Positions 6,751-54,571 of a DNA stretch of 64,000 nucleotides are shown in pieces. The DNA is from Heteronotia binoei (Eukaryota), in the NCBI RefSeq assembly GCF_032191835.1, contig NC_083236.1, forward strand, positions 12,772,001 to 12,836,000. The letters are read 5' to 3'. A program made the translations under genes and the position numbers. The first letter of the stretch is position 1, and every line of letters starts with the position of its first letter. The notes beneath the pieces are model-generated. The model was not told the origin of the DNA. It ran no database searches and saw only the letters and a list, made by a program, of their open reading frames with translations.

Positions 6751-8379
6751 TTTGGTTTTTTTTCAAATGATGGATTGTAAATACACCACAGCTGGAAACC
6801 TGGGCAGCCTCACCCAGACTTTCTGCAGATTCATTTGAAATGTAACAAAATCAGGAAATATTTATCTGAATTATATAGAGCCTGCTGAAAATTCTGTCCT
6901 AGGGAACCCTCAATATGTTTTGCTGAATTATCTTGAAGGTTTGATAGAGGAAGTGGATTTATAAGCAGTCGTAAATCTGCTTACAGATGCCCGAATGACT
7001 CCCTCCTTCCATTGGGGAAAGTATGAGGATAATCTCTCCCATTCGGGAATCGTTTTCAGATCTGGGATGCAGCCATAATGACAAAACATATTTACCTTAC
7101 AAAGGCGAGAAAAGGTTGCATTACAGAACATGTGTTTGTTCAAAAGCGGTCCACTTTAATTGCATTTTGGAACAACATATTCCAAGATGACATATGGCCA
7201 CATGCCCTGTTGGCAACAATTTCACAATGTTTTCTGACATTTTAAATCTTGGTTTTATGATGGCCAAGACAAGGTCTCGGAAGCTTTGCCTTCATTCGAG
7301 CTTCCTACAGCACTTTATCCGTTAGGAATGTTTAGATCGTTCTATGTCTTCCACAACATTTTTAATAGCAGAATCCCTGAGAAGACTACAACAGCAACCA
7401 ATCAGCAGTCTTTGTCAGGTTCTGTGTGTCTCGGTGTTCTCACTTGTATTAATATTTATGAGTTACTAACACATTATATCCTATTTGCTTAATTGTTCTG
7501 AAGTGTACACTAGCGTTATTGAGCCCCTTTTCACATTACCGTTCTAAACTGAATGTTATTTGTTGTTGGCCCAGTTTTGAGTAAAGCAATACAAAGACAA
7601 GAATTTCATACAGTGTATTTCCTTCTGTTAATGAGCCGTCTCTGAAATGCTATGGTCATTTCAAACACTGCTGCTTTTTTTCTCTGCCCTTTTCCACTGT
7701 GCAATCTTCCTTGGACTTTTTCAAAAATGTTCAAAGGTGAGCACTTTAGCACTATATAGTGGCACCATAGAGCTGCATTGATTCAGTAGCACTGCAGAAG
7801 TCACTTAAGAATGCTTTTTTAAAAGTCTGAGGAAGTCTGTGAGGCAAAAAAGGGCAGGGGGAAGCAGCATTGCGGGAAGCGCTGTGGACATTTTAAACAC
7901 CACACCACAGCGATTCAGAGGCACAACAAAGGAGCTGAAAATGGGGGGGAAGCAGTTTCCCTCTAAAGCAGCTCAACCACACTTTGCTAACCCAACACAA
8001 GTGGGTTTGTATGAACAGGTAAATAAATAAACAAAGCAGCCAGTTACTGAAACGGGACTCTGTCAGAAGCGACAGAAAAAATCCATTTGCAACCAGTTAC
8101 TAAAACGGAATACAACGGCAGTTTGAAAAGGGTCTTAAGGTTTCAGTAATGCCGTATTGACTTTCATGCGTGTTCTATTTTAAGTTATCTTTCCCTCTAA
8201 AAGAAAAAGTGAGGCTGACCCTATTCCATACCTTTTTAAGGTGACGTGGAACCTGTTGTCAGTGCAGGGTTCCCAACATCCAGGGTGAGGCTGGAGATCT
8301 CCTGGGATTACAACTGATCTCAAAGCAAGAAAGTGGCTCTTTCCCAGATGACCCCCCCACCAGGTTACTCGGTCTTTCA

Positions 8380-11210
8380 TCAATCACGGACTAGCAGGCG
8401 GGGGGGAGGGGTGGCATTATTCATACGGTAGGGTTACTCCTTCCGGGCTCTCCCGGCCCCAACAATCGAGGGTATTGAATGTGCTGGTCTAGACTGGGAT
8501 GTCAGAGAGGGATTGGCGATCTGGCTGGTGTACCGTCCGCCTAACGCACCAGCCAGCGCCTTACCATCCATGATGGAGGCGGTGGCAGGCTGGGCGTTGG
8601 AGGACCCAGGGCTTATGGTCCTGGGTGATTTCAACGTCCACGCTGATGACGTGGCCTCCAATCAGGTGATGGATCTGGTGTCGTCCATGGCGACTCTGGG
8701 ATTCTCTCAATTTGTCACGATGCCCACGCATCAGGCTGGACACACGTTAGACCTGATCTTTGCGTCCGGGATTTTGGTGAACGATATCGCGGTAGAAGCG
8801 GTCCCATGGTCGGATCACCTAGCCCTCAAGGCCCGTATGGAGACACCGCCTCAACCCTGTATGGGCGGAGAGCCTATTTTGGCTCGCCCGCGGAGCCTAA
8901 TGGACCCGGAACGGTTCCAAATGGCCCTGCGGGATCCCTGGCCCCCTGGCGATTCCCTTGATGACCTGGTGGAGGCCTGGCAAAACCAGATATCCAGGGC
9001 AATCAACAAGATCGCACCTTGACATCCTCTACGCCCTCGTGTGAGGCTGGTGCCATGGTACACCTTGGAGTTACGCCAGCTGAAACAAGGGCTTAGACGA
9101 CTAGAGAGGCAGTGGCGGCATACTCGTGACGAAGCGACGAGAACATCCTATAGATCGTTTATGAGGTCTTATGAGATGGCAGTCAAGGCCACGAAGAAAG
9201 CTTACTTTGCAGCCAGGATTGCGTCTGCAAATTCACGCCCAGCTCAATTGTTTAGAATAATTGGAAGTCTTATTACACTGCCTCAAGGCAGACCAAATGT
9301 GAGGGAATTAAAGATAGGCTGCAAGGCTTTCGCGAAATATTTTGCAGATAAAATCACGTCGCTCCGCCAGGACCTGCCTATCACTTTGCATACAGTACAG
9401 GAACTTGAGGCTCCATGCCTGTCTTCCGATTTCGTTCTGGATCGCTTTGACCCACTCAGCCTGGAGGAAGTCGACGGAATTCTCTCTTCTGCACGCCCAA
9501 CAACTTGTGATTTGGACCCTTGCCCCTCCTGGCTGATTAAATCCTGCCAAAGGGATCTTAGATGTCCTTTACGGGACATCATAAATAGATCCCTTTCCGA
9601 GGGGCGCTTTCCAGCACCTTTGAAAGAGGCTATGGTCCGCCCCCTCTTGAAAAAAAGTACAGCAGACCCGGCCAAATTGGCAAATTACTGACCGGTCTCT
9701 AATTTACCGTTTCTTGGTAAAATTATTGAGAGGGCAGTGGCGTTGCAGGGTTTTCTGGATGACGCTTCCATCCTAGACCCTTGCCAGTCCGGCTTTCGCC
9801 CAGGTCATGGGACGGAGACAGTGCTGGTCGCCTTGGTAGATGACCTCCAGCGGCATCTGGACCGAGGCAGCGTGGCGGTGCTGATGTTATTAGAACTGTC
9901 AGCCGCATTCGATACGGTCGACCATCGACTACTGACCCGCTACCTCGATGACATAGGGTTGGGGGGCTAGCCCTACAATGGCTTTCCTTGTTCCTCAAGG
10001 GTCGGGGACAAAGGGTGGCAATCGGGGGTGAGCTGTCCCAGAGGCACACACTAGATTGTGGGGTGCCGCAGGGAGCAGTTCTCTCCCCAATGCTATTTAA
10101 CATCTATGTGAGCCCCCGTGCCCAGATTGCCCGGAGGTACGGGCTTGGGTGTCACCAATATGCAGATGACACCCAGCTCTAACTGCTAATGGATGGCCGG
10201 CCTGACTGCGTTCCAGAGAATTTGGACCTGGCATTGCAGGCCGTGGCAACTTGGCTTAGGCTGAGTGGGCTGAAGCTGGACCCAATGAAGACAGAGGTCC
10301 TCTGCGTGGGTCGTGGCGTCCTAGGGAGGGAAATACCTCTCCCGGTTTTTGACGGTGTGCCTCTGAAAGCGGCGCACCGGGTCAAGAGCTTGGGAGTCCT
10401 ACTGGAGCCTTCATTATCAATGGAGGCCCAGATAGCAGCCACTGCCAAGTCAGCGTTTTTCCACCTGAAGCAGGCAAGGCAGTTGGCTCCCTTCCTGGAG
10501 CGCCGAGACCTAGCAACAGTGATCCATGCAACGGTCACCTCAAGATTGGATTACTGTAATGCCCTCTACATGGGGCTGCCTCTGTGCCGAACCCGGAGGT
10601 TGCAGCTGGTGCAGAACGCGGCGGCTAGGCTGATATTGGGGCTCCCGAAATGGGAGCACATACAGCCGGGGCTACGCGAACTGCACTGGTTGCATTACTT
10701 ACCGGGTTCGTTACAAAGTGCTGGTTATTACCTTTAAAGCCCTATATGGCCGAGGACCTGCCTACCTGAGGGACCGTCTCTCCCCATACGAACCCCAGAG
10801 AGCACTGAGGTCAGCAGGGAAGAACCAGCTGACTATCCCTGGACCAAAGGAGGCCAAACTTCAAAATACCCGTACACGGGCCTTCTCCATCGCAGCTCCA
10901 CACCTATGGAACCAGCTTCCGGAAGAAGTGCGAGCCCTGCGGTGCCTTGACCAGTTCCACAGAGCCTGCAAGACCACCCTTTTCAGGATGGCCTTTGCTG
11001 GCTGAGAGATAGTTGTTGGGTGACTTTCGCTACTATTATTTTATAATGGAATTAGCACCTGGAAATCTGTGTTGTATTTGGTTAATTGGAATGTTTTAAA
11101 GCTAATGTGATTTTAAACTTTGTATAACTATATGAAAATGTTGTTAGCCGCCCTGAGCCTGCCTCGGCGGGGAGGGCGGGATATAAATAATTTTTATTTT
11201 ATTTTATTAT
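8380..11210 (+). mobile_element. 5'-truncated, degraded L2-clade LINE (endonuclease and reverse transcriptase)
   Basis: RGGGVA, VYRPP and LGDFNVH endonuclease motifs; QSGFRPGH, GVPQGAVLSP and YADDTQL RT motifs; RAFSIAAPHLWNQLP C-terminus; gccgccctgagcc...gggcgggatataaat tail; several stops and frameshifts. Confidence 0.93.
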
Positions 11211-11506
11211 CCACCTGAAGAAAATGTCTGGACAGTAGACTTTATGGCATTATACACTGTTTTAGTTCTTCCCTTCCCCAAACCTGCCTTTCCTCAGGCT
11301 CAACTCCCAAACCCTCCAGAATTTCTCAACCCAGAGATGGAGTCCTTATGTCAGCACTGAGTAGCAACCGCTATTGGTGGCCTGTGCGCTCCATAATGGA
11401 TTGCATTTGAAAATAACACAATCTATACTGCCTTTATCTTGATGTTGTAAAAGCAGAAAATTAAATTTTGTGATGTCTTCAGGATACCAAAAACCAGAGT
11501 AACTTA

Positions 11507-11814
11507 GGAAAAGGAAAGGAAAGATCCCCTGTGCAAGCACCAGTCGTTTCCGACTCTGGGGTGACGTTGCTTTCACAACATTTTCACAGCAGACTTTTTA
11601 TGGGGTGGTTTTCCATTGCCTTCCTCAGTCTTTTACACTTTCCCCCCAGCAAGCTGGGTACTCATTTTACCAACCTAGGAAGGATGGAAGGCTGACTCAA
11701 CCTTGGGCCGGCTACCTGAATCCAGCTTCCGCCGGAATCAAACTCAGGTCATGAGCTGAGAGTTCAGACCACAGTACTGCAGTACCGCTGCTTTACCACT
11801 CTGTGTCACGGGGC
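11507..11814 (-). mobile_element. Sauria-type SINE (inside the duplicated block)
   Basis: Same family as 5815-6104. Confidence 0.8.
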
Positions 11815-11965
11815 CTTAACTTAAGGCAATCACAAAACAAAACTTCAAACTCAAGGCTGGATCCAAAGCTGCCATTTTGCTATTTTTGCCAGTTTCCTCA
11901 TCTTGGTGAAGATCCCATTCTGTTCCAGAAGGTTCTGTAACTTCCTTGAGCAGAATGGGGGAGGG

Positions 11966-12158
11966 NNNNNNNNNNNNNNNNNNNNNNNNNNNNNNNNNNN
12001 NNNNNNNNNNNNNNNNNNNNNNNNNNNNNNNNNNNNNNNNNNNNNNNNNNNNNNNNNNNNNNNNNNNNNNNNNNNNNNNNNNNNNNNNNNNNNNNNNNNN
12101 NNNNNNNNNNNNNNNNNNNNNNNNNNNNNNNNNNNNNNNNNNNNNNNNNNNNNNNNNN
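11966..12158. other. N-run (others at 26867-27032, 35118-35266, 36866-37149, 46893-47083)
   Basis: Read directly from the sequence. Confidence 0.95.
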
Positions 12159-12957
12159 TATCTACTGCTGGTGCTTTAGACCCAATCCACACATTTTATT
12201 AAAACATTGGTAGAGGTCAGTAACTGGAGACATGCTCCACTCTGTGCACAGGGGAATAGTGGGAAGCCAAGGGACATGGAGGACAAGGAAGCTCAGAGCC
12301 AAGGAGAAGCTGCCAGTCAAGGAGAGCGAAAAGAAAGAAGACGGCCAAGAGAGCAAATATCCTCCCTCCATCCAGAGCTCACACAACTCCTCTCCATTAC
12401 TGACCTACTCCTGTGACAGGCAAGAAGGAAGAGAGCATTTCCTGTGGTGGACAATCCCTCTCTTTTCTAGCAATCCCTCTCTCCAGTTTCCCCAGCTTCC
12501 TGGATCTGTGCTCTTCACCCCTCTATGTGGGGTGTGGTTGTACCCACTGTTCTTTTGGTTGATATCTTGGGAAGCCCGGAGCCAAAACCCTACGTAGCAG
12601 TGCACATCTCATGTGGAAACAGCAGTCGGCTTCCTCCACAACCACATCATCCCCCTTGGTCTAGCAGAATTCCTAGGGATGCCAGCCTCCAGCTGGGGCC
12701 AGGGGGTCTCCTGAAATTACACATCATTTCCAGACCACAGAGATCAGGTCCCCTGAAGAAAATCGATACTTTGGAGGGCGGACTCTATGGAATTGTACCC
12801 CACCGAGGTCTCTGTCCTTCTCAGGCTCCACTTCTAAACCTCCAGGGGTTTCTCAACCTGGAGCTGGCAATCCTACCCCCCCCCCCCGCATCCCCCACCA
12901 CTGGTCTGTGGTACGTGGTAACCCTGCAAGGGGAACTGCACACTGACAGATACTATT

Positions 12958-13180
12958 GGGGAGGGACGGTGGCTCAGTGGTAGAGCATCTGCTTGGGAAG
13001 CAGAAGGTCTCAGGTTCAATCCCTGGCATCTCCAAAAAAGGGTCCAGGCAAATAGGTGTGAAAAACCTCAGCTTGAGACCCTGGAGAGCCGCTGCCAGTC
13101 TGAGAAGACAATACTGACTTTGATGGACCGAGGGTCTGATTCAGTATAAGGCAGCTTCATATGTTCATATATGTTCATTG
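12958..13180 (+). mobile_element. tRNA-derived SINE with CR1-like (CATATGTT)n tail
   Basis: Head ggggagggacggtggctcagtggtagagc (A-box), ggttcaatcc (B-box), tail gtataaggcagcttcatatgttcatat. Confidence 0.85.
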
Positions 13181-19946: not shown

Positions 19947-20120
19947 GCTGCTGTTGTGGCCGGTCCAGTGCACCATGGCTTGGTTGTGCGCCGCGTCGCC
20001 TTTGAGCACGAAGGAGGTGCTGAGCAAGGCGGGCAGCGCCGGAGCCCCCCGCGGGCCCACCTCGCCCCCCGCCAGGCAGCCCAGCAGCAGCAGCAGCAGC
20101 CCCGCAGCCGCCAGCGCCAT
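19947..20120 (-). CDS. SORCS2: SORCS2 (VPS10-domain receptor) coding exon 1, 58 codons, phase-0 donor; the rest of the gene lies left of the window
   Basis: Translates [58 protein letters not shown] followed by a GTAAGG donor at 19946. [23 protein letters not shown] is the recalled start of the SorCS2 VPS10 domain; a signal peptide and CpG island are present; synteny with GRPEL1/TADA2B fits SORCS2. Confidence 0.92.
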
Positions 20121-20220
20121 GCTCGGCCTGCCCTCCTCTGCCGCCGCCGGGCAGGGATGCGCGGCCGGGCGAGGCGGTTGGAGAGGCGGAGGCGGAGAGG
20201 GGGCCGGCGCGGCCTCCGCG

Positions 20221-20245
20221 GGGAAGGGAAGGGAAGGGAAGGGAA
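20221..20245. repeat. (GGGAA)5 / (TTCCC)5 microsatellite in the SORCS2 leader
   Basis: Read directly from the sequence. Confidence 0.95.
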
Positions 20246-20423
20246 GGGGGCTCGCTCCGGAGCACGGGGCCGCGGCGCCCTCTGCCGGCCCATCGCGCCA
20301 TCGCCGCGCGAGGTGAAGCCCCGCGGCTCGCCCCTTCTTCGCCCACTCCGAGCCCCGAGGCGCCCAAGCCTGCCGGTGCGTTGCTGCGCGGGAAAGACCC
20401 CGCGGGGGCGCTCGGCCAGCCCT

Positions 20424-22748
20424 TGAACATACGAAGCTGCCTGATACTGCATCAGACTCTGGGTCCATCCAGGTCAGTATTGGCTACTCAGACTGGCAGC
20501 GGCTCTCCAGGGTCTCAAGCGGAGGTTTTTCACACCTATTTGCCTAGACCCCTTTTTTGGAGATGCCGGGGATTGAACCTGGGACCTTCTGCTTCCCAAG
20601 CAGATGCTCTACCACTGAGCCACCGTCCCTCCCCTTGGACATATGAACATATGAAGCTGCCTTCTACTGAATCAGACCCTCGGTCCATCCAAGTCAGTAT
20701 TGTCTACTCAGACTGGCAGCGGCTCTCCAGGGTCTCAAGCGGAGGTTTTTCACACCTATTTGCTTAGACCCCTTTTGTATTGGAGATGCCAGGGATTGAA
20801 CCTGGGACCCTCTGCTTACCAAGCAGATGCTGTACCACTGAGCCACCGTCCCTCCCCTTGGACATATGAACATATGAAGCTGCCTTCTACTGAATCAGAC
20901 CCTCGGTCCATCCAAGTCAGTATTGTCTACTCAGACTGGCAGCGGCTCTCCAAGGTCTCCAGCGGAGGTTTTTCACACCTATTTGCCTAGACCCCTTTTG
21001 TGTTGGAGATGCCAGGGATTGAACCTGGGACCCTCTGCTTACCAAGCAGATGCTCTACCACTGAGCCACCGTCCCTCCCCTTGGACATATGAACATATGA
21101 AGCTGCCTTCTACTGAATCAGACCCTCGGTCCATCCAAGTCAGTATTGTCTACTCAGACTGGCAGCGGCTCTCCAGGGTCTCCAGCGGAGGTTTTTCACA
21201 CCTATTTGCCTGGACCCCTTTTGTGTTGGAGATGCCAGGGATTGAACCTGGGACCTTCTGCTTCCCAAGCAGATGCTCTACCACTAAGCCACAGCCCCTC
21301 CCTGTGTCTCTCCAGGGTCTCAAGCTGAGGTTTTTCACGCCTCTTTGCCTGGACCCCTTTTGTGTTGGAGATGCCAGGGATTGAACCTGGGACCTTCTGC
21401 TTCCCAAGCAGATGCTCTACCACTGAGCCACCGTCCCTCCCCTTGGACATATGAACATATGAAGCTGCCTTCTACTGAATCATACCCTGGGTCCATCCAA
21501 GTCAGTATTGTCTTCTCAGACTGGCAGCGGCTCTCCAGGGTCTCCAGCGGAGGTTTTTCACACCTATTTGCCTGGACCCTTTTTAGTTGGAGATGCCAGG
21601 GATTGAACCTGGGACCTTCTGCTTCCCAAGCAGATGCTCTACCACTGAGCCACAGTCCCTCCCCAAAGTAACATTTCTTTTTTTCTGTGTGTCACTAATC
21701 TGAGTATTCCTCCTGATTAGAGGGAAAGGAGGTCATGCCAAAGCACAACAATATGCAGAAATTCAGTAGACGGCACCTTCCACAGAGGATCTTTTCAGCA
21801 TGCAGATACTATTTTTCATATCATCCTATTGGGGAATTTTTACTAGGGAGAAGTCCAAAGGGAGAGAAGCATTTGAACATATGAAGCTGCCTTATACTGA
21901 ATCATACCCTGGGTCCATCAAAGTCAGTATTGTCTACTCAGACTGGCAGCGGCTCTCCAGGGTCTCCAGCGGAGGTTTTTCACACCTATTTGCCTTGACC
22001 CCTTTTGTGTTGGAGATGCCAGGGATTGAACCTGGGACCCTCTGCTTACCAAGCAGATGCTCTACCACTGAGCCACCGTCCCTCCCCTTAGACATATGAA
22101 CATATGAAGCTGCCTTCTACTGAATCAGACCCTCGGTCCATCCAAGTCAGTATTGTCTACTCAGACTGGCAGCGGCTCTCCAGGGTCTCAAGCTGAGGTT
22201 TTTCACCCCTACTTACCTGGACCCTTTTTTGGAGATGCCAGGGATTGAACCTGGGACCTTCTGCTTCCCAAGCAGATGCTCTACCACTGAGCCACCGTCC
22301 CTCCCCTTGGACATATGAACATATGAAGCTGCCTTCTACTGAATCATACCCTGGGTCCATCAAAGTCAGTATTGTCTACTCAGACTGGCAGCGGCTCTCC
22401 AGGGTCTCCAGCGGAGGTTTTTCACACCTATTTGCCTTGACCCCTTTTGTGTTGGAGATGCCAGGGATTGAACCTGGGACCCTCTGCTTACCAAGCAGAT
22501 GCTCTACCACTGAGCCACCGTCCCTCCCCTTAGACATATGAACATATGAAGCTGCCTTCTACTGAATCAGACCCTCGGTCCATCAAAGTCAGTATTGTCT
22601 ACTCAGACTGGCAGCGGCTCTCCAGGGTCTCAAGCGGAGGTTTTTCACACCTCTTTGCCTGGACCCTTTTTTGGAGATGCCGGGGATTGAACCTGGGACC
22701 TTCTGCTTCCCAAGCTGATGCTCTTCCACTGAGCCACCGTCCCTCCTC
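20424..22748 (-). repeat. Head-to-tail array of 10 tRNA-derived SINE copies (about 220 bp each; clusters 20424-21666 and 21873-22748; one partial copy)
   Basis: Units are joined by ccctcccctt(g/a)gacatatgaacatatgaagctg; same family as 12958-13180. Confidence 0.93.
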
Positions 22749-26437: not shown

Positions 26438-27368
26438 TAGGGTTGCCAAGTCCAATTCAAGAAATATCTGGGGACTTTGGGGGCGGAGCCAGGAGACTTT
26501 GGGGGCGGAGCCAGGAGACATTAGGGGTGGAGCCAAGATCAAGGCCGTGGCAAGGGAGTTCTGGCCTTCACATTTAAAGGGACGGCACACCTTTGGTGTG
26601 GACAGCCAGTTTGGTGTGGAGAGCCAGTTTGGTGTAATGGTTAAGTGTGCGGACTCTTATCTGGGAGAACCGGGTTTGATTCCCCACTCCTCCACTTGCA
26701 CCTGCTAGCATGGCCTTGGGTCAGCCATAGCTCTGGCAGAGGTTGTCCTTGAAAGGGCAGCTGCTGTGAGAGCCCTCTTTAGCCCCACCCACCTCACAGG
26801 GTGTCTGTTGTGGGGGAGGAAGGTAAAGGAGATTGTGAGCCGCTCTGAGACTCTTCGGAGTGGAGGNNNNNNNNNNNNNNNNNNNNNNNNNNNNNNNNNN
26901 NNNNNNNNNNNNNNNNNNNNNNNNNNNNNNNNNNNNNNNNNNNNNNNNNNNNNNNNNNNNNNNNNNNNNNNNNNNNNNNNNNNNNNNNNNNNNNNNNNNN
27001 NNNNNNNNNNNNNNNNNNNNNNNNNNNNNNNNGGAAATAATGAAGGATAGGGGCACCTTCTTTTGGGGCTCATAGTATTGGACCCCCTGGTTCAATCTTT
27101 TTGAAACCTGGGGGGTATTTTGGGGAGAGGCACTGCATGCTATACTGAAAATTTGGTGCCTCTACCCCCCAAAAAAGCCCCCCCAGAGCCCCAAATACCC
27201 ACAGATCAATTCTCCATGATTTTCTATGGGAATAAATCTCCATAGGGAATAATAGAGTTCCCAGCAGACATTTCCCTCCCCTCTCCCCGCTTTCTGATGA
27301 CCCTGAAGCAGGGGGAGGGCCTCCAAACCGGGGGATCCCCTGCCCCCACCTGGGGATTGGCAACCCTA
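26438..27368. mobile_element. Non-autonomous hAT element (TAGGGTTGCCA type) with a nested SINE and an N-run
   Basis: TIRs TAGGGTTGCCAA ... TTGGCAACCCTA; perfect 8-bp TSD CTTGGAGA at 26430-26437 and 27369-27376. Confidence 0.88.
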
Positions 27369-34481: not shown

Positions 34482-35969
34482 CAAAGTTGTGTCATCATGT
34501 ACTTTGTCAGCAACGGAACCTCTTTTTTTACGCATGTGCAGTAACATTATCACAACATTGTGGAAGAAAAAGCTAGATGTATTGTGGGAGACAGCAGGGT
34601 GGCTGCCATGGCCAGTGATTTTCAAGCTGGATACAGCAATTCATGAGAGTGTTAGTCAATAATTATGAAGCTCACTAAATGTCCTCAGTAATGGAACCTC
34701 CCTTTTTCTCTCCATGTGCAGTAATGTTATAGCATCATAACATTATAAAGAAAAGGCTGGATGTTATCATGGGGAACAGCATGGTTGCCACCATTTCAAA
34801 GGTCCCCTGTGCCTCCTTAATCGCAAACTAAGAAAATGGCTGGTGAAGATTCCCACAAAACCCTAATGAAGATAGTATTTCATTTGCGATTGTCAAACTG
34901 GATACACCAATTCATAACAGTGCTATTCAATAATCATGAAGCATGTTAAATGGAAACATTGCACATGTTGACTTTCCATGATTATCAGATCAATTGTATA
35001 ATTCCATTATTTCCAAATGTTTAAAAGACTGAATTGTCATCAAAAATACACTGGGTGGGAGCTATAGGGGAAGAGAAGAGACGGGGAAAATGAAGAAACA
35101 ATACAAGCGCTAAGAGGNNNNNNNNNNNNNNNNNNNNNNNNNNNNNNNNNNNNNNNNNNNNNNNNNNNNNNNNNNNNNNNNNNNNNNNNNNNNNNNNNNN
35201 NNNNNNNNNNNNNNNNNNNNNNNNNNNNNNNNNNNNNNNNNNNNNNNNNNNNNNNNNNNNNNNNNNAATTGCATGGAGAAAGCTAAATTAAATCTTACTG
35301 CTCATTTTGTCCCTGCATTATAACACAGCGACATTTTTTTTTAATCAACATAATGCACCACAATTATGCTTTAAAAAAAACAGTCTGTTGTTTGTGGTAC
35401 TTGGGAGGGTGGGGGCCTGGGGGTTAGGGTGTACATGTGACACTGTGCAGCCTTTCTTTTCCTCGACACTAAATCCAAGCATGGACTAAAGGTAAAGGTA
35501 AAGGTAGTCCCCTGTGCAAGCACCAGTCGTTTCCGACTCTGGGGTGACGTTGCTTTCACAACGTTTTCACAGCAGTTTTACGGGGTGGTTTGCCATTGCC
35601 TTCCTCAGTCATCTACACTTTCCCCCCAGCAAGCTGGGGACTCATTTTACTGACCTCGGAAGGCCGGAAGGCTGAGTCAACCTGGAGCCGGCTACCTGAT
35701 AGGGTGGCCAGACCGTCCCGGTCTCCCGGGACTTTCCCGGTTCTGGCCCCCAATTCCCGGCTCCCGGGCTGGGTATACCGGGACCATTAAGAGGTCCCGG
35801 TTTAGCCAGCCAGAGAGCCGGGGGCCGCGCGCCCGGGCGGGGAAGGCGGCGAGAGAGGGAGGGAGCGACCCTGCGCGTGCGCAGATCGCTCTGCGCACGC
35901 GCAGGGACGCTCCCTCCCTCCCTCGCCGCTTTCCCCGCCCGCGCACGGGGCCCGGCGGGTGGCGGCGGA

Positions 35970-36795: not shown

Positions 36796-37151
36796 CTCCG
36801 CCGCCGCCGCTGCCGGACTCGCCGCCGCCGGACTAGCCGCAGGTAAGGGGGCCGGGGGGGGGCTGNNNNNNNNNNNNNNNNNNNNNNNNNNNNNNNNNNN
36901 NNNNNNNNNNNNNNNNNNNNNNNNNNNNNNNNNNNNNNNNNNNNNNNNNNNNNNNNNNNNNNNNNNNNNNNNNNNNNNNNNNNNNNNNNNNNNNNNNNNN
37001 NNNNNNNNNNNNNNNNNNNNNNNNNNNNNNNNNNNNNNNNNNNNNNNNNNNNNNNNNNNNNNNNNNNNNNNNNNNNNNNNNNNNNNNNNNNNNNNNNNNN
37101 NNNNNNNNNNNNNNNNNNNNNNNNNNNNNNNNNNNNNNNNNNNNNNNNNCG

Positions 37152-44479: not shown

Positions 44480-44830
44480 TGTGTTATCCAGACACGTTGT
44501 CCTCGAGCATAAATCCAGAATTAAGAACTTTGTGGCTGACGCTCCTCTTGTTGAACATTTTAGGAACCTCCAGCACGACCCTAATTCTTAAAGATTCTTT
44601 GTGGTCGAAAAGTTTCCTCAGATTACAGGGCAAAGTTGACATCACAAAATGGTTATTGAGACGTGAAATGAGGTGGATTTTTATATTGCGAACACTGACA
44701 CCTATAGGTCTTAACCACGACTGGGGTCTTTCTTGCTGTTTGTAATCATTGCTTTTTTGTAATAAATCATTGTAATCATGGTTATTCTTGCAATTTATGC
44801 ATTCTGTGGCCTCTTTTTGGTTTTTCAAAA
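44480..44830 (-). mobile_element. Possible highly degraded Penelope-like GIY-YIG fragment
   Basis: CINCKNN...SLRIRVVLEV is loosely reminiscent of PLE endonuclease regions; judged by eye only. Confidence 0.25.
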
Positions 44831-44869
44831 TATGGTAATCTGCACAGAGGAGTGAGGCGCTTCTGCACA

Positions 44870-45600
44870 ATAAGCCCTGGCGCGGTCCGGCTGTTCCCAC
44901 TACCCTCGCCCCCGACAAAGAAGAGGCCCAAGGGAGTCTCGGCTCGGTTCTTTCTTGCAGACGACGCGTTGGCCGGGAGCTCTCTCCAGCGAAGGAAGGA
45001 AGCCAGCCCAGCCAGCGCCTCCCAAAGCTGCGGCCTACCTCGGCCCGGCCACAGCGCCGTTGCCTTGACAACCATCAGGCGGAGGCTCCGAAGCGCCTCC
45101 AAGGAGAACCAAACTCCCTCCCCCGCCCTCCAAAGGCCGCTGCCTCACCCGAACGTGCTGGAGGTCGGGCAGAACATGCCGCCCTCGTGATTGGCTGTGC
45201 TCTCGCCTTAGCCGCTGATTGGACGAAGGGGGTTGCGTCAGGCGATCGGGGCGCGGGGCGGAGTCATTTTCCAGGCAGAAGCGGCAAGATGGCGGCGGCA
45301 GTGTGGGCAGCGCAGCGCTTTGGCGGGCGGGCTGTTCGCCTCTTCCTCCTACCGGGCCGGTAAGGCGAGACCAACCCAGCCCTTCCCCGGAGATCGGGCC
45401 CCAGCCGAGGCCCCGCCTGGCCTGGCCGCGAGGGAGCGGGAAGGGGGACGGCCGAGCTGCACGTGGGTGAAGCGTGCCAGGGGACCTGAGCCACGGGCCT
45501 CCCCCTGGTCACAAAAGGAAAGCAGGAGCGGCGGGGCCTCTATCCCAGCCTGCTGGAAGGGAGTGGAGCCTGCGGAAGAGGGAGGCAGCAGACGTAGGAA
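44870..45600 (+). promoter_or_regulatory. GRPEL1 CpG island and promoter
   Basis: GC/CpG-rich; ATTGG at 45190-45194 and 45218-45222; TGCGTCA near 45234; GC box GGGGCGGAG at 45255-45263; YY1-like AAGATGGCGGC over the start codon. Confidence 0.75.
45289..45359 (+). CDS. GRPEL1: GRPEL1 exon 1 (mitochondrial targeting peptide), phase 2
   Basis: AAGATGGCG start in a CpG island; MAAAVWAAQRFGGRAVRLFLLPG(R), Arg/Ala/Leu-rich with no acidic residues; GTAAGG donor at 45360; frame joins exon 2. Confidence 0.88.
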
Positions 45601-45876
45601 GGGGGAAACCAAATCCTTGCAAACACGAGAGAGCAGGAGCGCCTTAAAAACTGACACTGTCTCTGGCGGGATGAGCTTCCGTGAGTCCCTCACGTTGCAG
45701 GTTTTGTCAGTCTTTAAGGTGCTTCTGAACTCTTGCTCTTTTCTACTGCCCATCCTGATATATTTCTTCTTACGCACAGAAAGCTAGCAGATCGGGAAAA
45801 GGACTTAACCTCCCTGTTCTCTTGCTGCGCTGGTTGTCAGGGCATTTTTCGAAACGTAGGGCCCTGCTCCATCACG

Positions 45877-46089
45877 TGAACATATGAAGCTGCCTTATAC
45901 TGAACCAGACCCTGGGTCCATCAAAGTCAGTATTGTCTTCTCAGACTGGCAGCGGCTCTCCAGGGTCTCAAGCGGAGGTTTTTCACACCTATTTGCCTGG
46001 ACCCTTTTTAGTTGGAGATGCCAGGGATTGAACCTGGGACCTTCTGCTTCCCAAGCAGATGCTCTACCACTGAGCCACCGTCCCTCCCC
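45877..46089 (-). mobile_element. Same tRNA-derived SINE family, GRPEL1 intron 1
   Basis: Full-length reverse-complement copy; its head carries the 3.39-kb insertion. Confidence 0.85.
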
Positions 46090-49000
46090 AATAGTATCTG
46101 TCAGTGTGCAGTTCCCCTTGCAGGGTTACCACGTACCACAGACCAGTGGTGGGGTATGCGGGGGGGGGGGGGGTAGGATTGCCAGCTCCAGGTTGAGAAA
46201 CCCCTGGAGGTTTAGAAGTGGAGCCTGAGAAGGACAGAGACCTCGGTGGGGTACAATTCCATAGAGTCCGCCCTCCAAAGTATCGATTTTCTTCAGGGGA
46301 CCTGATCTCTGTGGTCTGGAAATGATGTGTAATTTCAGAAGACCCCCTGGCCCCAGCTGGAGGCTGGCATCCCTAGGAATTCTGCTAGACCAAGGGGGAT
46401 GATGTGGTTGTGGAGGAAGCCGACTGCTGGTTCCACATGAGATGTGCACTGCTACGTAGGGTTTTGGCTCCGGGCTTCCCCAGATATCAACCAAAAGAAC
46501 AGTGGGTACAACCACACCCCACATAGAGGGGTGAAGAGCACAGATCCAGGAAGCTGGGGAAACTGGAGAGAGGGATTGCTAGAAAAGAGAGGGATTGTCC
46601 ACCACAGGAAATGCTCTCTTCCTTCTTGCCTGTCACAGGAGTAGGTCAGTAATGGAGAGGAGTTGTGTGAGCTCTGGATGGAGGGAGGATATCTGCTCTC
46701 TTGGCCGTCTTCTTTCTTTTCGCTCTCCTTGACTGGCAGCTTCTCCTTGGCTCTGAGCTTCCTTGTCCTCCATGTCCCTTGGCTTCCCACTATTCCCCTG
46801 TGCACAGAGTGGAGCATGTCTCCAATTACTGACCTCTACCAATGTTTTAATAAAATGTGTGGATTGGGTCTAAAGCACCAGCAGTAGATTGANNNNNNNN
46901 NNNNNNNNNNNNNNNNNNNNNNNNNNNNNNNNNNNNNNNNNNNNNNNNNNNNNNNNNNNNNNNNNNNNNNNNNNNNNNNNNNNNNNNNNNNNNNNNNNNN
47001 NNNNNNNNNNNNNNNNNNNNNNNNNNNNNNNNNNNNNNNNNNNNNNNNNNNNNNNNNNNNNNNNNNNNNNNNNNNNNNNNNNNCCCTCCCCCATTCTGCT
47101 CAAGGAAGTTACAGAACCTTCTGGAACAGAATGGGATCTTCACCAAGATGAGGAAACTGGCAAAAATAGCAAAATGGCAGCTTTGGATCCAGCCTTGAGT
47201 TTGAAGTTTTGTTTTGTGATTGCCTTAAGTTAAGGCCCCGTGACACAGAGTGGTAAAGCAGCGGTACTGCAGTACTGTGGTCTGAACTCTCAGCTCATGA
47301 CCTGAGTTTGATTCCGGCGGAAGCTGGATTCAGGTAGCCGGCCCAAGGTTGAGTCAGCCTTCCATCCTTCCTAGGTTGGTAAAATGAGTACCCAGCTTGC
47401 TGGGGGGAAAGTGTAAAAGACTGAGGAAGGCAATGGAAAACCACCCCATTAAAAGTCTGCTGTGAAAATGTTGTGAAAGCAACGTCACCCCAGAGTCAGA
47501 AACGACTGGTGCTTGCACAGGGGATCTTTCCTTTCCTTTTCCTAAGTTACTCTGGTTTTTGGTATCCTGAAGACATCACAAAATTTAATTTTCTGCTTTT
47601 ACAACATCAAGATAAAGGCAGTATGGATTGTGTTATTTTCAAATGCAATCCATTATGGAGAGCACAGGCCACCAATAGCGGTTGCTACTCAGTGCTGACA
47701 TAAGGTCTCCATCTCTGGGTTGAGAAATTCTGGGGGGTTTGGGAGTTGAGCCTGAGGAAAGGCAGGTTTGGGGAAGGGAAGAACTAAAACAGTGTATAAT
47801 GCCATAAAGTCTACTGTCCAGAGTAGCCATTTTCTTCAGATGGATAATAAAATAAAAAAAAAAATTATTTATATCCCGCCCTCCCCGCCGAAGCGGGCTC
47901 AGGGTGGCTAACAACATTTTCACATAGTTATACAAAGTTTAAAATTACATTAGCTTTAAAACATTCCAATTAACCAAATACAATACAGATTTCCAGGTGC
48001 TAATTCCATTTATAAAATGACAGTAGCGAAAGTCACCCAACAGCAATCTCTCAGCCAGCAAAGGCCATCCTGAAAAGAGTGGTCTTGCAGGCCCTGCGGA
48101 ACTGGTCAAGGCACCGCAGGGCTCGTACTTCTTCCGGAAGCTGGTTCCATAGGTGTGGAGCTGCGATGGAGAAGGCCTGTGTACGGGTATTATGAAGTTT
48201 GGCCTCCTTTGGTCCAGGGATAGTCAGCTGGTTCTTCCCTGCTGACCTCAGTGCTCTCGGGTTCGTATGGGGAGAGATGGTCCCTCAGGTAGGCAGGTCC
48301 TCGGCCATATAGGGCTTTAAAGGTAATAACCAGCACTTTGTAATGAACCCGGTAAGTAACGCAACCAGTGCAGTTTGCGTAGCCCCAGCTGTATGTGCTC
48401 CCATTTCGGGAGCCCCAATATCAGCCTAGCCGCCGCGTTCTGCACCAGCTGCAACCTCCGGGTTCGGCACAGAGGCAGCCCCATGTAGAGGGCATTACAG
48501 TAATCCAATCTTGAGGTGACCGTTGCATGGATCACTGTTGCTAGGTCTTGGCGCTCCAGGAAGGGAGCCAACTGCCTTGCTCGCTTCAGGTGGAAAAACA
48601 CCGACTTGGCAGTGGCTGCTATCTGGGCCTCCATTGATAATGAAGGCTCCAGTAGGACTCCCAAGCTCTTGAACCGGTGCGCCGCTTTCAGAGGCACACC
48701 GTCAAAAACCGGGAGAGGTATTTCCCTCCCTAGGGCGCCGCAACCCACGCAAAGGACCTCTGTCTTCGTCGGGTTCAGCTTCAGCCCACTCAGCCTAAGC
48801 CAAGTTGCCACGGCCTGCAATGCCAGGTCCAAATTCTCTGGACCGCAGTCAGGCCGGCCATCCATTAGCAGATAGAGCTGGGTGTCATCTGCATATTGGT
48901 GACACCCAAGCCCATACCTCTGGGCAATCTGGGCAAGGGGGCGCATATAGATGTTAAATAGCATCGGGGAGAGAACTGCTCCCTGCTGCACCCCACAATC

Positions 49001-49480
49001 TAGTGTGTGCCTCTGGGACAGCTCACCCCCGATTGCCACCCTTTGCCCTGACCCTTGAGGAAGGAGGAAAGCCATTGTAGGGCTAGCCCCCCAACCCCTA
49101 TGTCGGCCAGGCGGCGGATCAGTAGCCGATGGTATCGAATGCGGCTGATAGATCTAATAACATCAGCACCGCCACGCCGCCTCGGTCCAGATGCCGCTGG
49201 AGGTCATCTACCAAGGCGACCAGCACTGTCTCCGTCCCATGACCTGGGTGAAAGCCGGACTGGCAAGGGTCTAGGATGGAAGCGTCATCCAGAAAACCCT
49301 GCAACGCCACTGCCCTCTCAATAATTTTACCAAGAAACGGTAAATTAGAGACCGGTCAGTAATTTGCCAATTTGGCCGGGTCTGCTGTACTTTTTTTCAA
49401 GAGGGGGCGGACCATAGCCTCTTTCAAAAGTGCTGGAAAGCGCCCCTCGGAAAGGGATCTATTTATGATGTCCCGTAAAG
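46090..49480 (-). repeat. Inverted copy of 9567-12957 inside GRPEL1 intron 1
   Basis: Contains L2 (about 47860-49480), a Sauria-type SINE (47234-47541) and unique DNA; flanked by the direct repeat AGCCACCGTCCCTCCCC at 46073-46089 and 49479-49495. Confidence 0.95.
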
Positions 49481-51001
49481 CCACCGTCCCTCCCCGATTC
49501 TCCCCCTGTCATTGTACTCCTTTATTTTATTCTATTTTATTCAGTTATTCCCCGACTTTCTCCCCCATGGCGTTTCAGAATGGCTTAGCTAATTCTCCAT
49601 GTTATCCTCATAATATCCTGGTGAGGTAGGTTAGGGCTGAAAGAGGCACCCAGTGAGTATGACCGTCTCCTATCTTGTTTCTGTCCTGAGGAATGGGTTG
49701 GGGATGCTGAAACGGCCCTTGAGCAAGCACAGAGCCTTGTCCCTTGTGCTGGCTGCTCATTCTACCATATCAGTGCAGGATTATTGACTTATCTCATGTA
49801 CAGTTTTCAAAATATGGCAGTATCTCAATGGCTTTCTTCCACGGAAAAAAAGATATTTGGAAGAACATGCTAGATTTGCGGAAGGGGGGGGAAGGGTGGC
49901 TACGGAGGTACTTTGTGAATATAGCCTCACCTTGTGATCTTGACCCATTTGTCTTGAAATCCCAGGGTGGCAGATAAAAGCCTGAAACTTTTATCAAGCT
50001 TTTGTCAAAGTACCAGTTCAAGCTTTATTTCCATGTTGGTTCAATTTAACTGCTGAATTACTGTGATTGCAGGTGTCTGTGGTACAGAAAACTGCAGTAC
50101 ATGTAAAATCACACTTTTAAAAGTTCTTGTTAGACACACTTGTCTGTGGCAAATAGTATATTCCAGCAGTTGTACACAGAATAATGCAATAAAGTTTGTA
50201 ATGAAGTGTTTCTAATCACAAAAAAGGAGAAAGAACAAATATTTTAAAATCTTGTTACTAATAGGGTCTATAAATCATACTGTTCAATATGGCTGTGGTG
50301 TATTTTCGGAGTCAGTCATTTGTGAGTTCCAGAATACATATACTCAGCTATACTCAAAGTCAGTCCTGTGTTATTCAGTGGAGTGTACTAACTGGAAAAT
50401 ACCTGTAAGGGTGCAGGCATAATCTGATGGTAACCTATCCAGTTATTGGTTCTGTTTTTTCCCCTTAATCATGGAATGATCATCAGTGTTCACTTTTGAT
50501 GCCTAGTGAGTAGCACTCAATATACAAAGGCTTTTTTCTAATGCTCAGAAGCTCTTTCCCTTAAAATAAGGTCTGCAGACGTTCTTGAGCAAACTGTATT
50601 TCTCAAATAAAGGTTTATTCTGGGTATAAGCTTTCATGTGCGTGCATGCATGCATGCTTCTTCAGCTCCATTGAAACAGAATTCACCAACCATTGCATAT
50701 AGGTAGCGGGTGAGGAGGATGTTGTCAAGAAGGGCCGGTTATTCTGTTGCTATGACCTACATGGCTCCCCCACCTGAATCTGTGTTATCAAATGTTTGTC
50801 TAATAAAAAAAAGTACCATTCCACCTCCTCTGTGTATTGGACTGAGTTTTCTTAAAGAAAACTCTAATGCTCAGAAGCTCTTTCTCTTAAAATAAGGTCT
50901 GCAGACGATCTTGAGCAAACTTTATTTCTCAAATAAAGGTTTATTCTGGGTTTTCTTAAAGAAAACTGCTTTAATTCCATTGAATACGATTTTTGTTTCA
51001 G

Positions 51002-51173
51002 GACTTCTCGAATGCTTTGTACAGTGACTCAGGAGAAAAGTACTGGACCAAATTTGGAAGAGGAGCCCAGTCACCACAACAGTGAACAGAAATCTGATTC
51101 TAAGTCTGCTGCTGCTGCAAAGTTAGTAACAGAGGAAAAAGCTAAACTGGAAGAGCAACTAAAAGAAGTAACA
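51002..51173 (+). CDS. GRPEL1: GRPEL1 exon 2
   Basis: tttgtttcag acceptor and GTAAGA donor; encodes TSRMLCTVTQEK...EEKAKLEEQLKEVT; 71+172 nt = 81 codons. Confidence 0.93.
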
Positions 51174-51503
51174 GTAAGAATCCTTGGATTTGTTTTCTCA
51201 AAATATTTCAGTAGATAGGTAGTACTATTGAAGTTAGTGTTAATAATTGATTTCAGAACTGAGATTTGACAACTCTAATACCTGAAAAAAGGAGATCTGA
51301 CAGTTGTAAGGTCTACTCAGAAGTAATGCCTGTGTTATTAGATGAGGCATACTCCCATGAAAGTGTCCTCAGGGTTGCAACCAAAGTATTTGTAGTATAA
51401 ACTAAAGTGGTTTGAACTGCTTCTGAAGTCTGCATGGAGTCCTACATTTCCACCTCGTGAGCTGAAGCTAATTTTCCTTTGCCAAAAATAGGAATGTCTA
51501 TAT

Positions 51504-53130: not shown

Positions 53131-54224
53131 GTAAGTATAGAGTTGTTTTTGTTAGGTTGGCACCCTAATAATCATGACTTAAGGCTAAAGCTTGAAAATA
53201 TAACAACAATGCCATTCATCTAAAGCAAGGGTCCCCGAACATTTTGAGCCTGCAGGAATATCTGGAATTCTGACCATGGCATGGTGGGTGCAGCAACAAA
53301 GTGGTTGCCACAGCTTACCTTCAGTCACACAGTGCAGATCCTTGTGCTGTGGTGGCAGCGGCTGTCAGAGAAACATTTTTTTTTTTTCAAAATCTGCACT
53401 AGTCAATCGGAAGCCTTGCTGGGTAAAAGTCCTACCTAGTCCCACTCGCTTCCTAAAAACACTTGGTGGATGCCAGAGAAGGTTTCCGTGAGCACCTTGG
53501 CACCCACAGGCACCACATTGGGAACCCCCGATGTAAAACATGTACTGGTGGCACGGCTTTAAAGAAGCACAGATAATATTAACTAGCTTGGGTTTTCACT
53601 TCATGGCATAGGAGGCACCAGTAAGTTGCACCCAAACCTAAGGAACTTTGTCACCCTGGACATATAAACATATAAAAGAATTAAATTAAAACGTAGAAAA
53701 GAATTAAAAGTGCCGCCCATTTTTGAGCTTGAGACTAAGGATGAATCTTGGGACTGAAAAAAGTTGACGTTTGCAGCTAGTACTCCTGCTGTAACTTTGA
53801 TGCTGCAGTTCTGTAAATATTAGAGATGGGCATGAACTGGAAAAATGCAGTTCTTGTTGGTTCATGGCTGAACCGCAAGCAGAATTGAATGGGAGACTCA
53901 TTTGCAAACTAAACTAGTTCATGGCCCCGCAAACCCTATTAAAAGGGGCCACATTTCCTTTAAAACAGGCTTTCTAGTAAACATACGCAGGGTCCTGAAG
54001 CATAATCTGCATTAACTGCAATCTGTCGTGGCCTGTATCTTAATAGAGTTCTCTCAGTTGTACAGGATGTTGGTATCTCAGTACTTAGTAGCATATCATA
54101 GTTAATAGGTGTACTTCCTGGGCCTGAATACTGCAGACAAATCTGGAACAAACATTTTCTCTCAGGCAATTGGAGTATTATTACACTCAGGATCGACTGA
54201 AACGTGACTGATTTCTTGCTTTAG

Positions 54225-54571
54225 GGATTCAGAGTTTCTGTAAAGACTTGTTAGACGTTGCTGATGTTCTGGAGAAAGCAACAGAGAGTGTTCCCAAAGA
54301 GGAGCTCAAGGATGAAAACCCTCATCTGAAAAACCTCTACGAAGGTCTTGCTATGACTGAAGTTCAGATACAGAAAGTGTTTGGAAAACACGGCTTGGTG
54401 AAACTGAATCCCCTTGGGGCCAAGTTTGATCCTTATGAACACGAAGCATTATTCCACGTCCCCATGGAAGGGAAGGAGCCCGGCACAGTAGCTTTAGTGT
54501 CTAAGGTTGGCTATAAATTGCACGGCCGTACTCTGAGGCCCGCCTTAGTTGGCATAGTGAAAGAACCATAA
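54225..54571 (+). CDS. GRPEL1: GRPEL1 exon 4 to stop; full CDS 672 nt, 223 aa GrpE nucleotide-exchange factor
   Basis: ttcttgctttag acceptor; GIQSFCKDLLDVAD...FDPYEHEALF...GYKLHGRTLRPALVGIVKEP* carries GrpE C-terminal signatures. Confidence 0.97.

Follow-up and report, generated by a model that had tools for sequence, protein, structure and literature searches.

A 3.4-kb inverted duplication seated on a resident SINE in Heteronotia binoei, probably copied from a DNA template 33 kb away

Among long interspersed elements (LINEs), 3' transduction is established for L1. Templated sequence insertions mediated by L1 ORF2, known as class 1, are defined by a target-site duplication (TSD) of at least 5 bp, by poly(A) following a cryptic signal and by a TTTT/A site (PMC5110952). 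In human rearrangements a first template switch within intrachromosomal inverted repeats, inverted Alu pairs among them, is followed by synthesis in the reverse direction and by a second junction closed through 1-9 bp of microhomology or through end joining (PMC11293582). One-sided invasion, at least in the summary given by a later paper, combines homology at one end with end joining at the other, large parts of the template being copied in (Puchta 1998 as cited in PMC5895730). The subject of the present analysis is a window of 64,000 nt from the reptile Heteronotia binoei (NCBI RefSeq assembly GCF_032191835.1, contig NC_083236.1, positions 12,772,001 to 12,836,000 of the forward strand; all coordinates below count from its first letter), in which a block of 3,391 nt consisting of part of a LINE and its 3' flank occurs twice in opposite orientations, the second copy abutting the head of a short interspersed element (SINE). 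The block was probably inserted as a DNA-templated inverted duplication, through repair or replication that used the SINE as a foothold. The locus is a natural specimen of a known mutation class and not of a new mechanism.

The features on which the comparison depends are as follows.

8328-11205, plus strand: donor LINE, with endonuclease and reverse transcriptase in a decayed open reading frame (ORF) and a 3' end at about 11205.
9567-12957, plus strand: donor block, made up of the 3' part of that LINE (9567-11205) and, between it and the donor SINE head, 1.75 kb of unique 3' flank.
12958-13170, plus strand: donor SINE, in sense, with the tRNA-derived head GGGGAGGGACGG... and without the TAG variant.
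45877-46089, minus strand: resident SINE; the head is at 46089, and the element has both the TAG variant (46009-46011) and a minor G (45974).
46038-46089, unstranded: homology junction, 52 nt over which the heads of the two SINEs are identical; the template was switched within this stretch or, at its widest, within 46012-46089.
46073-46089, unstranded: first copy of the direct repeat, the 17-mer AGCCACCGTCCCTCCCC, with which the resident SINE head ends.
46090-49480, minus strand: inserted inverted copy, with the unique flank at 46090-47843 and the LINE part at 47844-49480.
46893-47083, unstranded: run of N within the copy, homologous to the donor N run 11966-12158.
49479-49495, unstranded: second copy of the direct repeat, of which the first 2 nt, AG (49479-49480), are common to the donor; then the unique flank GATTCTCC...

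The inverted match between copy and donor was recovered by a repeat search, by BLAST and by global alignment, each on its own. The repeat search returned four collinear inverted segments (9567-12887 against 46162-49480), BLAST matched 45877-46889 with 13167-12160 at 98.5% and 47084-49480 with 11965-9567 at 96.5%, and global alignment gave an identity of 97.7% for the block, with 73 substitutions in 3,188 aligned non-N positions and eight indels that amount to 10 extra nt in the copy and 10 in the donor. The original prediction had taken one arm for the reverse complement of the other; the inversion and the two spans of 3,391 nt stand, but the match is not exact, an ungapped comparison breaking down after 65 nt, and the equal lengths are a coincidence because the eight indels cancel. 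When the 2.63-Gb assembly was searched with the non-LINE part of the block (46090-46892), exactly two full matches were found, namely the two arms, on the same contig. A search for further copies of the block had been proposed as a check, and it yielded only these two in the genome. In the genome search the flanks of the target site are unique on both sides (about 44810-45876 and 49481-51487). Terminal inverted repeats or Helitron-type ends were not seen in the junction sequences, which were read by eye with no dedicated search.

Copying ran from donor to copy, as had been predicted. The donor LINE continues 5' to 8328, whereas the LINE in the copy is truncated inside the ORF at the equivalent of 9567, so that the junction between LINE and flank arose at the donor. 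Full copies of this LINE family are about 2.95 kb long and have a single ORF with endonuclease and reverse transcriptase. The 3' end at about 11205 in the donor is supported by the many family copies that stop at the position matching 47844 of the copy, and 47844-49480 falls within this high-copy family at 90-95% identity, with the donor arm closest at 97%. In the donor LINE Pfam places Exo_endo_phos at 8513-9022, with open frames across 8432-11002, and within the copy RVT_1 is found at 48317-49075 (minus strand). The donor LINE lacks about 91 nt of the 5' end of the family, other genomic copies reaching 91 nt further 5', and its ORF is broken. Pfam and protein-atlas searches on the LINE gave only endonuclease and RVT_1, and the earlier label L2 is unconfirmed.

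The two parts of the block have diverged to different extents. In the non-LINE part the arms differ by 0.9% (14/1,554), and by this measure the duplication is recent. At typical squamate rates 0.9% represents a few million years. The LINE part (47844-49480 against 9567-11205) is four times as diverged, at 3.6%, with half of the differences in CpG context and a CpG observed/expected ratio of 0.58; with CpG sites left out it still shows about twice the divergence of the flank (Poisson p ~0.0006). The excess may come from residual effects of fast CpG decay in a LINE that is young and rich in CpG, from conversion by other copies of the LINE, or from the two together.

Global alignment confirmed that the donor block extends as far as the donor SINE head at 12958, and that the first 52 nt of the donor and resident SINEs (46038-46089) are identical. 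Farther into the element the two are separated by 4 substitutions and an indel of 3 nt, and they have unequal numbers of tail repeats. Two of these differences fall at sites that vary within the family. The 3 nt at 46009 are deleted in 31% of about 8,800 SINE reads and are also missing from the donor SINE, while T is found at 45974 in 92% of reads, as in the donor SINE, where the target SINE has G. The same G recurs at this position in units of a SINE array at 20.4-22.7 kb. Because the TAG indel and the minor G lie at family-polymorphic sites, the body of the resident SINE did not come from the donor SINE. The target SINE was in place beforehand, and the shared homology within which the predicted template switch took place was confined to its head, at most 46012-46089. 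Loose read ends at 46088-46090 coincide with the 5' end of the SINE family.

These sites bear on the possibility that the whole of 45877-49495 is a single chimeric retrocopy, produced in one event of target-primed reverse transcription (TPRT) from the SINE tail of a read-through transcript. Homology between the two loci does span the whole SINE and stop at the SINE tail, which is what the partner LINE would recognise. Yet the SINE bodies differ at the two family-level variant sites and in tail-repeat number, there is no target duplication around 45877-49495, the 17-mer would need a second template jump, and the sole apparent parallel in the genome, locus L032, is an ordinary nested insertion. 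A one-piece retrocopy that includes the SINE is scarcely credible and was rejected because the body of the target SINE was not copied from the donor SINE. Addition of the 17-nt head by template jumping was a further candidate, dropped when L032, a SINE split by an insertion with a duplication of about 6 nt, proved to be nested.

The SINE family is large. The head occurs in 13,642 exact copies in the genome, and read depth indicates about 14,500 copies at an identity of at least 95%; only about 13 SINE copies lie in this window. No target duplication of the resident or the donor SINE itself was found, and the TSD signal of the family was not above a shuffled control. At 20424-22746 about 10-11 units of this SINE stand in tandem, head to tail, with a period of about 220 nt and 93-97% likeness between units. 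Read joints in which a head is followed by a tail are abundant genome-wide, and tandem SINE arrays are therefore common in this genome.

The two junctions of the insert are of different kinds. At the first, SINEs in inverted orientation on the same chromosome (12958-13170, plus strand; 45877-46089, minus strand) share 52-78 nt of identity at their heads, and the 3' side of the insert joins the resident SINE head directly, with no LINE-type, poly(A) or A-rich tail. The far junction has the predicted 2-nt microhomology (AG), common to donor and target. The insertion site is CCCC/GATT, not TTTT/A-like. The 17-mer AGCCACCGTCCCTCCCC was found at 46073-46089 and again at 49479-49495; with the repeat thus present at both ends of the insert, a target duplication of 15-17 nt is as described in the original prediction, with a small chance that the repeat was there beforehand.

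How small that chance is can be judged from the genome-wide occurrence of the orphan 17-mer. Its search gave 13 hits, and seven aligned loci consist of a SINE head, TAA(A), the 17-mer and flank; with a relaxed pattern, nine copies elsewhere carry a head, TAA and the same 17-mer. The resident SINE could then have been a rare element with a head, TAA and a second 17-nt head, the insert having come to lie between the heads by one-sided invasion and microhomology-mediated end joining of a clean break, with rejoining through the 5-nt microhomology TAAAG and without duplication of the target. The structure head-TAA(A)-AGCCACCGTCCC... does occur in nine SINE copies at independent loci, and TAA also precedes the second 17-mer at this locus (49476-49478). 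Against this, the variant accounts for only about 9 of 13,642 SINE copies (some 7 in 10,000), the TAA in question is accounted for equally by the donor LINE, which reads GTAAAG there, with a chance match expected 1 time in 64, and 6 of the 7 aligned variant copies are without the TAG indel of the resident SINE; a pre-existing duplication is accordingly rated as very unlikely.

The head-duplicated variant carries a 20-nt duplication of the 5' head, in sense GGGGAGGGACGGTGGCT-TTA-GGGGAGGG..., at loci L033, L035, L038, L039, L040, L042 and L043, and L040 carries several tandem units of it. Because the TTA spacer is constant, the variant suggests a small subfamily and not independent events. Tandem duplications of 16-48 nt across the boundary between SINE head and flank were also seen (L057, L059, L060, L061, L074, L080 and L044/L045), which suggests that the SINE 5' junction is prone to slippage or to templated end-joining scars.

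The donor lies 33 kb away in cis, amid 13,642 exact SINE heads, and a random template would be this near about 1 time in 1,000. A proximity-dependent mechanism is for this reason favoured by about 1,000 to 1 over a freely diffusing template, and the same distance is indirect evidence for a DNA template and for a possible association with replication. The 5' truncation of the donor LINE and the lack of a tail 3' of the insert are further arguments for DNA as template. As to pathway, break-induced replication (BIR) or its microhomology-mediated form (MMBIR) could have switched template twice, or a one-sided strand invasion could have been completed by end joining. In either case a break or a collapsed fork would leave a 3' DNA end in the resident SINE head (about 46089), and this end would pair with a SINE of its own family that lies in opposite orientation 33 kb off on the same chromosome (12958-13170). 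Synthesis would leave the donor SINE for its upstream flank and copy 3.39 kb, made up of 1.75 kb of unique sequence and 1.64 kb of the 3' part of the LINE. The new strand would then quit the donor and rejoin the original site through the 2-nt AG microhomology, 15-17 nt behind the point of departure, and a return behind that point would leave a short part of the SINE head duplicated in direct orientation. Such a duplication follows naturally from a replicative return jump but not from a blunt two-ended break.

Of the described systems, the duplication-triplication/inverted-duplication rearrangements (DUP-TRP/INV-DUP) attributed to BIR/MMBIR share with this locus a first junction in inverted repeats (here 52 identical nt), reverse synthesis, a second junction by microhomology (here AG) and a nearby template in cis (PMC11293582). 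They differ in scale, tens of kb to Mb as against 3.4 kb, and in direction, since synthesis at this locus ran away from the interval between the repeats, which gave a simple inverted insertion and left the 33 kb between the SINEs unduplicated. One-sided invasion, or synthesis-dependent strand annealing with end joining, the 'filler DNA' of the portion of the literature summarised in PMC5895730, resembles the locus in its one homologous end, in copying past the homology and in the non-homologous ligation of the other end. In that portion it is described mostly for induced breaks with supplied templates, and it does not itself predict a duplication of 15-17 nt. The pair of junctions and the copying beyond homology are both present at this locus, and the target nevertheless gained 15-17 nt, unless the head-duplicated SINE was the target. 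Class 2 templated sequence insertions, which patch breaks, likewise bring a templated stretch from elsewhere and have junction microhomology, but they are short patches without target duplications from distant, mostly unlinked, transcribed donors, whereas here one junction is homologous and the donor is linked (PMC5110952).

A search for analogous events was directed at orphan SINE heads cut off from the rest of the SINE, with exact patterns of 17, 20 and 14 nt and inserts of less than about 1.5 kb. A search for other insertions whose TSD equals a SINE head had been proposed as a check, and no second case of a SINE head, a long insert and a duplicated head was found in the genome with exact repeats and about 1.5 kb around each hit, which counts against an RNA-based process. 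The other 17-mer hits were the head-duplicated SINE variant, SINEs with internal deletions, the nested insertion L032 and one ambiguous locus, L031. Orphan heads of 20 nt were internal deletions or short tandem duplications, and those of 14 nt were at noise level, the control giving more hits; many of the latter were short tandem duplications over the boundary between head and flank. At L031 (G000:C1:199606461-199607360) the orphan 17-nt head stands immediately next to 590 nt of a very young, high-copy repeat family (98% identity; 6,399 first-look candidates), and the locus may represent either a nested insertion or a further junction like the one described here.

Several considerations weigh against this reading. 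A target duplication of 15-17 bp is a hallmark of the staggered nicking that accompanies TPRT, whereas a simple double-strand break with blunt ends does not predict it and has to be supplemented by a return jump or by staggered ends. Retroelements are very active in this genome, with families at 98% identity, and reverse transcriptase is plentiful. Public reads were sampled to only about 1.6x, at which the junction at 49480 and any empty allele fall below reporting thresholds. Nothing in the sequence is incompatible with an RNA template.

An insertion of this second type would be TPRT-like. A transcript of donor LINE, flank and SINE would anneal through its SINE to the nicked head of the resident SINE, the reverse transcriptase of the LINE would copy back to 9567, the end of the complementary DNA would be joined by the 2-nt microhomology, and staggered nicks would give the duplication of 15-17 nt. 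It would amount to a homology-targeted transduction, in which a non-L1 reverse transcriptase acts at a site set by SINE-SINE homology and not by the 3' end of the LINE, and as such it is regarded as unlikely. The TSD-like duplication, the 5' truncation of the LINE within its ORF and the microhomology at the 5' junction are classic features of TPRT, no AATAAA is present on the plus strand of 9567-13170 to halt read-through, and retroelements are young and abundant here. A cis donor at 33 kb among more than 13,600 SINE-bearing sites is, on the other hand, not what would be expected of a diffusible RNA. The donor LINE lacks the first ~91 nt of its family, which makes a read-through RNA from its own promoter doubtful, and the 3' side of the insert has no tail. 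LINEs other than L1 usually depend on having their own 3' end at the terminus of the RNA, which also tells against the proposal. On the original prediction's account the host gene runs on the opposite strand, which would be another argument against a read-through RNA. In favour of an RNA template, templated insertions made from RNA are known in humans (PMC5110952).

The original prediction had set out both models, the read-through RNA and the DNA repair event. Both do fit the anatomy, and structure alone cannot separate them, but the 33-kb cis donor, the 5'-truncated LINE and the absence of a second event from the exact-repeat search now favour the repair model. With the single event described, and an RNA template given a low probability, a DNA template and one of the two pathways above are what we infer.

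Compared with LINE 3' transduction and class 1 insertions, the locus shows both likeness and difference. The copied flank lies directly 3' of the LINE, the 1.75 kb being contiguous with the LINE 3' end at about 11205, and 5' truncation, 5' microhomology and a direct repeat of 15-17 nt, longer than the 5 bp asked of class 1, are all present (PMC5110952). In contrast to those insertions, there is no poly(A), LINE tail or new terminator, the insert ends in homology to the resident SINE, and the site is CCCC/GATT, not the TTTT/A of class 1 (PMC5110952). The source LINE is 5'-truncated instead of full-length, with 91 nt gone at the 5' end and a broken ORF, and donor and target are 33 kb apart. A literature search for 3' transduction by CR1, BovB or L2 returned nothing.

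Since the reads amount to only about 1.6x at the locus, the case against an assembly artefact depends on the sequence itself. Such an artefact would consist of a haplotype or mis-joined piece of the donor placed inverted at the SINE, and it is made more plausible by the position of one junction in a SINE of high copy number, in which mis-joins can be made by assemblers, and by the fact that the other is below reporting thresholds in reads at ~1.6x. The arms, however, differ by 73 substitutions and 8 indels and are not one sequence placed twice. The far junction, with 2-nt microhomology to unique flank and a 17-nt duplication, is not of a kind made by an assembler, both flanks are unique and continuous on a contig of more than 71 Mb, and no alternative contig carries the site. 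An artefact is thus highly improbable. Raw reads carrying the label of this species agree with the unique flanks at an identity of at least 95% and at about the expected depth (~1.6x sampled), as reads of the right species should; depth on the unique part of the insert is too low at this sampling to be informative and dips beside the masked run. Among the indexed public runs none holds the locus (share <=0.07).

Two further observations concern read depth. The 'unique' flank of the block contains, at 47332-47529, a repeat of very high copy number, with a summed read depth of about 5,000 compared with about 2.6 for unique flank. To the left of the resident SINE, 45550-45747 has a roughly 10-fold excess of read depth, yet the genome search listed no other copy.

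The runs of N in the two arms are in register, with 194 nt between the flanking alignment anchors in each. The arms being collinear through the Ns, the masking is letter for letter and the runs are not independent or estimated assembly gaps; they behave as masked sequence. All five N runs of the window (11966-12158, 26867-27032, 35118-35266, 36866-37149 and 46893-47083) are of irregular length, from 149 to 284, and look like purposeful masking of real sequence and not assembly gaps. The run at 26867 begins exactly at the end of a second type of SINE (96% match to locus L032).

A GrpE-domain exon lies 4.7 kb downstream of the copy, at 54221-54562 on the plus strand, with 119 open codons that match Pfam GrpE positions 58-165 at 111 bits, and apart from a match on contig C5 the genome has no other GrpE hit. 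The exon speaks for a putative GRPEL1-like gene that runs from left to right downstream of the copy. The host gene of the donor is presumably SORCS2, with exon 1 at 19947-20301, a label carried over from the original prediction and unconfirmed.

At present the locus represents one event, of a class already known, and no evidence of recurrence was found. If the RNA reading were true, interspersed repeats could guide the deposition of host sequence by a non-L1 reverse transcriptase, which would be new. The locus is a clean, base-resolved natural case of an abundant young SINE seeding a segmental duplication, with SINE homology on one side and microhomology on the other. A second copy of about 1.75 kb of intronic DNA, including a masked stretch, now stands inside or beside a neighbouring gene. 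The logic is the same as that of the rearrangements mediated by Alu elements and low-copy repeats in human disease, here in a reptile.

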